From contig NIVC01003194.1 of NCBI GenBank assembly GCA_002269645.1, positions 1-64,000 on the forward strand: a DNA stretch of 64,000 nt, written 5' to 3'. Source of the DNA: Macrostomum lignano (Eukaryota). Position numbers and translations under genes: made by a program. Positions 11,599-14,794 of the stretch are shown in pieces (positions within the stretch are counted from its first letter, which is position 1; every line of letters begins with the position of its first letter). The notes under the pieces were generated by a model. It was not told the DNA's origin. It did not search any database and was given only the letters and a program-made list of their open reading frames with translations.

Positions 11599-14500
11599 CT
11601 ATATTTTTGACCTCGGTGGCCGCAGACCCTGCAGCCGCTCTTCCACTTTGTTCTCCAGCCACTGAGGCACGTAGCCGAGCATCCTGGAGCTTCTCCTGCG
11701 CAGCTGTCGCAGCATCTCCAAATCTCGACAGTAAACTGCAGCCACAATCAGCTCCTGCTCATCCGTATCTACCCTGTGCACCACATCCCGGATCCAGTCT
11801 TGAGCAATGGAGTCTCCTGCTCCAATCAGATCGAAGCGGAGCGCACAAAGCAGAGCGTCGAAGTTCACGAAGAAGTAATTGTCGTAGTTTTCCAGCTCAA
11901 GCGAAATGAACTCTGCGACAATCAAATTTCCGATATGAAGCTCAGGCCGCTTGTTAATGTCGAAGTCGAAGCAGAGCTTCCACGTGGAGTCTCGGCTCCT
12001 CAGGTGCCCCCACACCAAGTCCGCAGTCGCCTCACTCGCCGACCTCTCAGCGGACCAGTCGATGCCTCTGCTCGCGCTGAACGGCCTGCAGTCGCTCACG
12101 ACTTTCGCTGCAGCCTCTCGGTCGCCGAACTTCAGGCAGATCAGCGCTCTGAGAGACTCTCGCTTTGAGAAGGCGCAGTCTGGCAGCTTGCCGATCAGCT
12201 CCGAGAGATGCTGTCGGGACTCTGGGCTTCGGTCTCCGTCTGACACTCCGAGAAGCGACTCTCTCACAATGCTGTAGATCTCGTGGTATTCGCATACGTT
12301 CGCTGCTGACACTGGAGCTTGCTTGTATATCAGTGGCAGAATGAGAAACGGGTGGAAGTGGAATCGGCCCGAGTCGGTGACGGGTCGCAGGCTGTGCTCG
12401 AACTCCAGCAGCAGCTCTGGGAGCCTATCGATCGCCTCTCTCACTGCATCGGCTGCCTCATTCAACGCTCGAGTCGCCTTCTCAGCTGATGTGGTGTCCA
12501 CGCCTCTCAGGTACACAGCGGCATCGCCAAGGAAGAAGTGGTCCATGATCCTGGCGTCAGCTCTGCCTGATCTGCAGTCGCTCTCAAGCATCTGCAGCGA
12601 GCGTCTGGTGAGACTCACGTGATTCCGAGCGTCGTTCCACTGCTCAGCCGGTGTCTGCTCGAGCATTTGGAACGCGATGGTCTTTGCGTGATACGACTTG
12701 AAGCCGTTGTGTCGGACGGCCTTCTTCAGCAGCCACTTGAGCGTGACGAACAGCTGGCCCTGCAGAGTGGTGAGACTCCGCAGCAGCGGGTTCTCCAGGA
12801 AGCTGGTACTCACTCGGAGCTGCTGGCCTCCTTTTCCGGGAGGCGCTGCGTGCACCACGTGACAGGGCGATGAAGAAGATGTGAGGAGATGCTGGAGCGA
12901 CCGCAGCACGAACTGGGGGACTTTTGAGTCGGAGACTCGGTTCTCAAGCAGCGGCGCGATTGGCGGGTAGCGGCAGAGGCGGCGGGCGATCACAAAATCC
13001 ACTGCTGGTCTCAGGATCGAGCCTCTGAGTTGAACTGCTGGCCTGGATGCTGCAATGCACGGAAGACGAAGAGATGAGTAATGAAGGCAGAGTACTTTCT
13101 GATGGAAAAACATTCACCGCAAGCAACAAAACTACAGTTAATCGATACAGGAACTCGTAAAAAAATATATTTTATCTCTGTGGACAACTGCATTTGCTAG
13201 GTAACCGGCTAATTTAGGTCATCATCAATAATCTGCTTTCACGTCTTAATCGAGTACCACCGAGGCTCTTCTTCGAAAATCGAAAGATTGACAGACGGAC
13301 AGACAGACATTAAGACAAACAGACAGACAGACAGACAAACAGACAGACAGACAGACAGACAGATAGACACACAGGCAGATAGACAGACAGACAGACAGCA
13401 GACAGACAGACAGACAGACAGACAAACAGACAGACAGACAGACAGACAGACAGACAGACAGACAGACAGACAGACAGACAGACAGACAGACAGACAGACA
13501 GACAGACAGACAGACAGACAGACAGACAGACAGACAGACAGACAGACAGACAGACAGACAGACAGACAGACAGACAGACAGACAGACAGACAGACAGACA
13601 GACAGACAGACAGACAGACGGGCTGTCTCTCACCGTATCCGGGACTCAAGACGTGTCCGTTTCGGTATTCCACTTTTTTTGTCACTCCTTTGCACTCGCA
13701 CATATCCCTGGGGTGAATCGTGCTTCCTACAAGTAGCAAAATCACGTCAATGTCGGACTCGATGCCAGTTCCGTCCAGAGTGACCAGGCTGTTGCCCCAG
13801 CCCTCCGAGACGCTGCCCACCACTAAAAGGCCAACATACTTCAGTCTTCTCCTCAGGACATCCTGCAGGACATCAGCCACGGCGCTCTGCAAGGTGGCTC
13901 TGGAATCCACGAATCCCGAGCGGGTCAGCGCTGAGTGCAGCTGCTGGCTGAGGTCATTGTCGCTGGGAGCGGCTCTGGATGATGGGAGGAGTGGGGGCTG
14001 CTGTGATTCACTGTGATTGGCTGAGATCAGATGCATAATCAATTTATACCCCAGAGTGGCATGGAAAATCTGATCAAGCTTGAATTCTCAAAAGGCTCAT
14101 GAAGGACATCCTACGCGCCAGATTTTTGTATTTCATCATCATCTAGCAGCCGAGTGATCTTCAAATCTCACCGTTCGAAATGGCGACTTCAAAATAGCAG
14201 GTACCTGAAGGTCCATACAGACACCTGACTAATGGATATGCAGGGACACTAGATTGATTAAAATGCTGGTCACCAGTTTAAATAACCAAGTTTCACCGAC
14301 CAACAAAACCTGCAGCACTGTATTTCACACCCCTATAACAAGCAGCAACTCAGCAGCGCTCACCTGTCTGCAGTTTCTGCGGCCGAATTCGGTCGCTCAT
14401 CGCCCGTCAGCGCACGGTGCAGAACTTGTTCAGATCGCTCACTGCCGAACTCGATGGCACGATTGAGAGCGGATTGAAGTGACTCTCGAGAGCCTTCGAG

Positions 14501-14794
14501 AGCGGAGGCATTGAGAAGCGACTCAACCACCTGATGGTGGTCGTTTTGTGATGCAATGTAGAGATGTGACTCGCCAGTGATGAGTCGAACATTAACGTCG
14601 GCTCGTGCTCTGAGGAGCTTATCTAGTACCTCATGGTGGCCTTGCGCTGATGCAATGTAGAGAGGTGACTCGCCATTGTTTTGTTGAAGACTGACGTTGG
14701 CTCCTGCTCTGAGAAGTAGATACACTTCTGCTCTGAGAAGGTTATTACAGCAGCATTCACTAGCTTTCCCTAAGAGTGCTGTGGTCCGCTGCAC
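11599..14794 (-). CDS. Ankyrin-repeat + Mab-21/cGAS-like (cGLR-type) nucleotidyltransferase, spliced; true start uncertain
   Basis: Exon about 14794-14364 has ankyrin repeats ([28 protein letters not shown]). Exon about 14010-13634 has the NTase signature VGSVSEG...SDID. The phase-1 intron 13633-13050 (GTGAG..GCAG) joins in frame to exon 13049-11599, which has [12 protein letters not shown] and KSYHAKT (Mab-21 domain) plus a C-terminal extension. Confidence 0.8.
13290..13620. repeat. (GACA)n microsatellite, intronic in the Mab-21 gene
   Basis: About 80 tetranucleotide units inside intron 13050-13633. Confidence 0.97.

Follow-up and report, generated by a model that had tools for sequence, protein, structure and literature searches.

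Gene structure and domain content

The locus described here occupies positions 11599-14794 of a 64,000-nucleotide stretch of the Macrostomum lignano genome (contig NIVC01003194.1, positions 1-64,000; hereafter the window, meaning this entire stretch). Sequence comparison and structural prediction together provide strong evidence that it encodes a cGAS-like (Mab-21/cGLR) nucleotidyltransferase (NTase) fused to ankyrin repeats. As rebuilt from the sequence, the gene comprises three in-frame exons on the minus strand, and its predicted spliced product is 740 amino acids (aa) long (Table 1). All 740 codons are open, the four splice sites are intact, and the exon junctions, all of them in frame, agree with the splice consensus GT[G/A]AG / CAG reported for M. 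lignano (PMC8629364). Residue numbers refer to this 740-aa model and are obtained from core alignment numbers by adding 143.

An identical three-exon structure was found at three full paralogous copies, one at locus L001 (contig NIVC01001474) and two in tandem at locus L002 (NIVC01001606). The peptide spanning the intron 1 junction is the same as in the paralogue proteins P0002 and P0004 and in P0001 (UniProt A0A1I8GAT5), the best protein match, which is itself a partial model of the window locus and carries no Met. The splicing of ankyrin repeats to an NTase core, proposed by an earlier reading of these letters alone (the sequence-only reading), is borne out by the in-frame exons and their consensus sites, and the full-length paralogues carry the ankyrin repeats, the NTase and the C-terminal part within a single gene. 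The assembly index, queried for exact matches to the window open reading frame (ORF) and to P0001, returned no records. The initial splice model had used an in-frame acceptor at 14010, adding 12 aa; it was dropped because the paralogue models and P0001 use 13974, where a polypyrimidine tract is present. Downstream of the probable 3' untranslated region (UTR), a hexamer scan located ATTAAA at 11384. Intron 2 contains a (GACA)83 microsatellite (13290-13619), and the equivalent place in the L002 paralogue holds a (CTGT)253 array.

Pfam searches with the window protein identified Ank_2 (E 2.5e-12, residues 15-95, positions 14752-14510) and Ank (E 1.3e-7), and tandem 33-residue ankyrin (ANK) units are present. 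The NTase motifs and SYHAKT lie where the sequence-only reading had put them. The GS motif and the triad D218/D220/D275 are complete, so that the window copy carries all the elements of a cGLR active site, namely G[S/G], [D/E]h[D/E] and a third acidic residue. Each of the corresponding core positions (G54/S55, S74/D75/D77 and D132) reaches a conservation of 90% or more in an alignment of 46 sequences (A3, below). Of 50 family representatives scorable for all three motifs, 45 have an intact catalytic triad. The lack of a predicted functional active site that characterizes MAB21L1/2-type proteins is not seen in the window copy.

A near-invariant H-x4-C-x-C...H insert (H231, C236, C238 and H251; 13715-13650) follows the DxD strand and precedes the third Asp. 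This cluster may be a zinc site, placed differently from the zinc thumb of cGAS.

The additional helical sequence at the C-terminus, previously put at about 250 aa, measures 262 aa (residues 479-740). The first AlphaFold model, built on 13 sequences, predicts it as largely helix at a per-residue confidence (pLDDT) of 70-92. This domain matched no Pfam family and no PDB sequence, its profile had no similarity to the extensions of mollusc-type cGLRs, and the whole AlphaFold model found no match among viral structures. It is conserved across the family, the published protein PAA45980.1 included, and within the reach of these searches it occurs solely in the M. lignano ankyrin-cGLR family.

Table 1. 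Coordinates of the ankyrin-cGLR gene and associated features in the window (a slash between bases marks an exon boundary).
Feature	Positions	Strand	Remarks
Unique DNA	14722-15641		920 bp in place of paralogue (L001) 9827-11147
Ankyrin exon	14364-14794	-	Open frame, 5' boundary undefined; donor CAG/GTGAGC
Intron 1	13975-14363	-	389 bp; GTGAGC...CATCATCCAG
NTase exon	13634-13974	-	Acceptor CATCATCCAG/A, donor TACG/GTGAGA; N-terminal helices, GS, D218/D220, H-x4-C-x-C...H insert
GS motif, G197-S198 in VVG197S198VSEGWG	13817-13812	-	
D218 and D220 in ESDIDVI	13754-13746	-	
Intron 2	13050-13633	-	584 bp; GTGAGA...TTGCAG
Final exon (exon 3)	11599-13049	-	Acceptor TTGCAG/C; stop codon 11601-11599
Exon 3, first part	12388-13049	-	D275, remainder of NTase core, Mab-21 C-terminal helical domain with SYHAKT
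Third Asp, D275 in PAVDFVI	12999-12997	-	
SYHAKT	12696-12679	-	Mab-21 helical lobe
C-terminal domain	11602-12387	-	Residues 479-740, 262 aa, family-specific
Probable 3' UTR	11455-11598	-	Conserved with paralogues; blastn homology to L001 extends to 11455

Homology and predicted fold

Proteins have been assigned to the cGLRs by their homology, by the completeness of their active site and by AlphaFold similarity (Li et al. 2023; 10.1101/2023.02.22.529553, PMC9980059). Three alignments were used here: A1, made of 13 family cores with the ankyrins trimmed off; A2, made of 21 proteins from the weaker tail of the profile search; and A3, which combined the family with A2-type relatives (46 sequences). 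PF20266 was matched by all 13 family members (best E 2.3e-7), and the A1 profile, run against PDB sequences, recovered cGAS at E ~3e-6, together with porcine cGAS chains and a cGLR1 weakly, and nothing else. A word-index search returned 34 matches, every one an M. lignano protein and many of them with both Ank and Mab-21_C Pfam domains. Exhaustive profile searching of 1.84 billion representatives produced 870 matches, 85 of them below 1e-30; the ten looked up among these 85 were all from M. lignano or unnamed, and in the weaker tail (E ~1e-11 to 1e-14) PF03281 and PF20266 occurred together in 10/10 sampled proteins.

Aligned with each other by hhalign, A1 and A2 gave a probability of 99.8% (E 3.6e-29) over 303 columns across both lobes, with GS paired to GS, SDIDVM to SDxDxM and PAVDxVxAxRLC to D.V.A.RC. 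A2 itself matched Sp-cGLR1 (8gjy, E 2e-30), MB21D2 and cGAS (~1e-18), and its D.V.A motif aligned on SVDL of the solved cGLR 8gjy. The homology expected of a cGLR (PF03281 + PF20266) is therefore found at the level of the family.

In a first AlphaFold run, based on 13 sequences, the NTase sheet stayed below pLDDT 50; Foldseek searches with this model reached E ~1e-3, the top matches all being cGAS or MAB21L1. A reliable AlphaFold2 model of the core (pLDDT 92.5, predicted TM-score (pTM) 0.92) was obtained with the 46 sequences of A3. With this model, the 50 top Foldseek matches in the PDB were without exception cGAS or Sp-cGLR1 (E ~1e-8, probability 1.00, TM-score (TM) 0.49-0.60), and the predicted structural homology to cGAS/CD-NTase that is asked of a cGLR is present. 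The cGAS-like fold suggested by the sequence-only reading is thus the common result of family profile, hhalign, AlphaFold and Foldseek. That reading was to be given up if the model lacked a pol-beta fold; given the AlphaFold and Foldseek results, the fold is predicted to be there.

Members of this family have been sampled before. The 140-enzyme screen of Li et al. 2023 (PMC9980059) includes five M. lignano proteins (Table S3, nos. 89-93) that carry the motifs of this family. The domain table of that study has PAA-prefixed accessions with Ank_2, and a PAA prefix was borne by every M. lignano GenBank protein encountered here; among the supplementary-table rows listed, no accession of a closest paralogue turned up. 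One published protein, PAA45980.1 (BOX15_Mlig022265g3), is represented by a 90% cluster representative that scored E 2e-111 against the family profile. It is 936 aa long with N-terminal ankyrins, and the published construct starts at residue 323; the ankyrins were therefore removed in the screen, in which poly I:C and dsDNA alone served as ligands (PMC9980059). Ankyrin- and TPR-fused cGLRs are minor architectures in the same study. The window gene is a further member of the ANK-cGLR class described before, and novelty cannot be claimed for the fusion, as ANK-cGLR fusions have been published and M. lignano family members catalogued and cloned (Li et al. 2023).

Loss of the 5' end and selection on the remainder

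In the paralogues, the first exon is a single ORF of 503-702 codons that starts MGFLQRLF... and holds 10.0, 10.8 or 15.6 tandem 99-bp ankyrin units. Homology of the window's ankyrin exon to the paralogues is limited to 14721-14364 (blastn to L001 11148-11515, 85%); homology to the flanking DNA upstream of the paralogue restarts at 15642-15784 (corresponding to L001 9682-9826) and at 16110-16488. The 920-bp segment between them, which matches nothing else in the window and nothing in L001 or L002, replaces the start codon, an N-terminal region of ~130 aa and most of the ankyrin array. On this comparison, the window copy has lost the 5' 1.3 kb of the gene. What is left of the array is ~2.5 units (two full, one partial) followed by a degenerate capping unit and a linker; two of the units are diverged and accompany a conserved terminal unit, against 10-16 units in the paralogues. 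Both the start codon and the family 5' exon are missing, and the copy cannot be regarded as a complete gene. Within the 920-bp segment (window 14860-14990 and ~15209), GATGACTCATC occurs three times and contains an AP-1-like TGACTCA, alongside a TATAAATA box in plus-strand orientation.

Comparison of exon 3 with L001 gave a ratio of nonsynonymous to synonymous substitution rates (dN/dS) of 0.41 overall, with 0.26 in the core part and 0.50 in the C-terminal domain. When changes were polarised with three paralogues, those private to the window branch numbered 15 synonymous and 18 nonsynonymous (omega ~0.39); the neutral expectation, estimated from site counts, is ~8 and ~25, respectively. By these counts, the window copy shows purifying selection for much of its history. 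A route to translation might be provided by the M. lignano spliced leader, which ends in ATG and is trans-spliced to ~30% of genes (PMC8629364). Among the 17 AGs scanned, one is in frame (TGTGCAG/CGG, first exon base 14788), with an imperfect fit to [T/C]TNCAG, and trans-splicing at this site might, as a hypothesis, restore a start codon.

Ankyrin arrays of the paralogues

The ankyrin arrays of the full paralogues (L001 10365-11364; L002 10365-11440 and 24299-25850) are built of 99-bp units that are 91-95% identical. Variation was compared over 34 units from the three full first exons. The framework ADVNLQ...G.SPLYIAS..GHHEVVDRLLKAR is nearly invariant, its 27 codons differing at proportions of 0.0105 for synonymous (pS) and 0.001 for nonsynonymous (pN) sites, and six variable codons per unit hold all the variation (pS 0.32, pN 0.45). 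Three of the six precede the conserved Gly (RNT, EKVS/EKVI, EVD, VVD, LNT, GNT), one follows it (S/E/C) and two stand before GHH (QN, AY, AA, KN, QQ). The number of units varies between the tandem paralogues.

The consensus of designed ankyrin repeat proteins reads DxxGxTPLHLAAxxGH..., and we take the six variable codons to be the positions that form the target-binding surface of ankyrin repeats. From the combination of homogenised units, hypervariable contact residues and changing copy number, it can be argued that the ankyrin array is a recognition module. The suggestion of the sequence-only reading that the ankyrins have a sensing or regulatory part accordingly gains indirect support, which extends to the hypervariable binding-surface positions of the paralogues and not to those of the window copy. 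No published report of ankyrin hypervariability in cGLRs was found, and this signature may be new.

The annotation of these genes is affected by their repeats. The gene of P0004 (PAA65921.1), at L002 10001-29445, spans two full tandem copies and fuses the first exon of one with the last of the other, and family models of 871 aa collapse the ankyrin array, which in the genomic first-exon ORFs gives 503-702 codons. Family annotation is therefore unreliable in repeat number.

Interpretation and alternatives

Our preferred explanation is that the locus is a 5'-shortened paralogue of a large M. lignano ankyrin-cGLR family, with its active site complete, its remainder constrained and its ankyrins probably engaged in sensing or regulation; we give it a probability of roughly 0.72. 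As in other cGLRs, the enzyme at rest would be inactive until a ligand is recognised. The three acidic residues with two metal ions would then link nucleoside triphosphates into an oligonucleotide second messenger, cyclic or linear, that would switch on a downstream receptor. In this family, ligand recognition or regulation probably falls to the ankyrin array instead of to a basic nucleic-acid-binding surface alone; if it is expressed (e.g. by spliced-leader trans-splicing), the shortened copy would represent a version whose sensor array is minimal. A broader and distinctly more tentative proposal is that M. lignano possesses a large, fast-evolving repertoire in which cassette-like variable ankyrin arrays are mounted on a cGLR with a lineage-specific C-terminal domain, possibly with non-STING signalling, the window copy being a minimal-array or decaying member.

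Several observations weigh against the preferred explanation. Taken alone, the window protein matched PF20266 at 16 bits (E 0.012), under the 24.1 cut-off, and PF03281 not at all. Searches of the 64-kb window by tblastn with 34 family proteins found no upstream ankyrin or N-terminal exons, and no ATG precedes M234 in the retained frame; as M234 is downstream of D218/D220, a protein started there would lack GS and both aspartates. The evidence for hypervariability derives from the paralogues and not from the window copy. The 15 actives described by Li et al. 2023 (PMC9980059) came from insects, anemones, molluscs, hydras and corals, with the five M. lignano constructs not among them, and therefore no flatworm enzyme is included. 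No family member has a known product or enzymatic activity. Lastly, cGAS and STING have been reported as lost in Schistosoma mansoni and absent from Schmidtea mediterranea; M. lignano is not included in the cGLR/STING count table.

The most serious competitor, less probable than the preferred explanation though far from negligible, is that the locus is a recently dead gene fragment, which lost its promoter-proximal exon sequence and start codon by deletion or replacement and makes no protein, its frames not yet having decayed. The missing ATG, the unrelated 920 bp in place of paralogous sequence, the further truncated family fragments at L001 2760-1535 and L002 5856-4775, and a public model (A0A1I8GAT5) that is likewise a fragment without Met are what such a history would leave. 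However, 740 codons stay open over three exons with four intact splice sites, the window branch has an excess of synonymous changes over the neutral expectation, and one AG acceptor (14788) puts the spliced-leader ATG in frame.

It is rather unlikely that the core senses double-stranded nucleic acid directly, as do cGAS and Drosophila cGLR1, with ankyrins that merely localise or recruit. The window core is indeed basic, with an isoelectric point (pI) of 9.26, a property that Li et al. 2023 tie to nucleic-acid sensing (PMC9980059), and its best structural matches include DNA-bound cGAS ternary complexes; across the family, however, core pI ranges from 6.1 to 9.3, the reported actives include none of the ankyrin-free M. 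lignano constructs that were offered dsDNA and poly I:C, and variation is concentrated at the binding-surface positions of the ankyrins, as expected of a recognition module. Least probable is a non-signalling Mab-21-type protein (a MAB21L1/2-like scaffold, or an NTase of other chemistry) with no second-messenger role, for which the MAB21L1 matches of the lower-quality model and the lack of a known product could be cited, but which fits poorly with a triad complete here and in most scorable representatives and with the dN/dS of 0.26 in the core exon region. We therefore retain the 5'-shortened, constrained ankyrin-cGLR paralogue as the best account of the locus.

Other features of the window

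Two intronless ORFs of 353 aa, encoding PP1-like Ser/Thr phosphatases (Metallophos, E ~1e-30), lie in inverted orientation at 23596-24657 (+) and 39068-40129 (-). Between them lie a segment of low GC content (30%) at 28-34 kb and, at 35505-36146, a fragment of a retroelement endonuclease. The same phosphatase gene adjoins the paralogue in L001. Large minisatellites (15-bp x55, 20-bp x32 and others) were found upstream and downstream of the ankyrin-cGLR gene (16535-17356, 18263-18886 and 8518-9998), with related arrays flanking the L001 and L002 paralogues as well. At 24951-27609, a 2.6-kb repeat of strong GC skew, composed of PPASGMAPSNTH / HLHQEWHHQTPT units and with several minus-strand frames open, is probably a minisatellite rather than a gene.

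Among the remaining ORFs are two paralogous pairs for multi-pass membrane proteins (209-1680 and 20875-22741), one with a weak-to-moderate Otopetrin match (E 1.9e-14). A duplicated gene pair at 45505-46959 and 57520-59647 (-) consists of a glycine-rich, secreted-looking ORF and a Cys-rich / Thr-Pro mucin-like ORF, with no Pfam match. An intronless ORF at 51687-52751 carries a Glyco_transf_15 (alpha-1,2-mannosyltransferase) domain (E 8.5e-33), a family better known from fungi than from animals.

Significance and comparison with known systems

Among the innate immune sensors of animals, the cGLRs form a major family, most members of which have no known ligand. Flatworms are usually cited as losers of the pathway, which makes the large expansion in M. 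lignano, its active sites intact, a useful exception. While this expansion has already been catalogued, the present analysis adds an exact gene structure, a copy that is 5'-truncated yet constrained, the observation that published in vitro tests were performed without the ankyrins, and the ankyrin signature of the paralogues. If that signature holds, the family would offer a tractable model for the sensing of non-nucleic-acid ligands by cGLRs, because M. lignano is amenable to transgenesis.

The closest known systems are the M. lignano cGLRs of Li et al., such as PAA45980.1, which come from the same species and profile family and share the layout of ankyrins, NTase, Mab-21 and a long C-terminal domain, as well as the motifs GS..W.., SD.D, LRVSTS.LER, SYHAK and HFF. 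Their identity to the window core is ~34%; unlike the window copy, they are full-length proteins that have a start codon and a more extensive ankyrin region. The ANK-cGLRs of the coral Stylophora pistillata likewise combine a cGLR core with ankyrin repeats, in another phylum. Li et al. 2023 propose the ankyrins of ANK-cGLRs as a protein- or ligand-interaction module (PMC9980059). MAB21L1 and MAB21L2 share the Mab-21 fold, but Mab21L1/2/3 have no predicted functional active site according to Li et al. 2023 (PMC9980059), whereas the triad is intact in the window copy.

Human and mouse cGAS and Sp-cGLR1 (8gjy) share with the window family the bilobal pol-beta NTase + Mab-21 fold and the aligned GS, [DE]x[DE] and third Asp, at 13-18% identity; the window family adds the ankyrin and C-terminal domains. 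The zinc thumb of cGAS, H(X5)CC(X6)C, is not seen at its position in the family, which has the H-x4-C-x-C...H insert instead. For the ankyrin arrays, the nearest parallel is with fungal NLR-type receptors, which Paoletti and Saupe and, in 2014, Dyrka et al. are said to have described as bearing highly internally conserved ANK/TPR/WD repeats. The two systems are alike in their near-identical DNA repeats, in variation at binding-surface residues and in changes of repeat number. The signal domain of the fungal receptors is a NACHT/NB-ARC ATPase, whereas here it is a cGLR nucleotidyltransferase, so that the likeness is an analogy of design and not homology.

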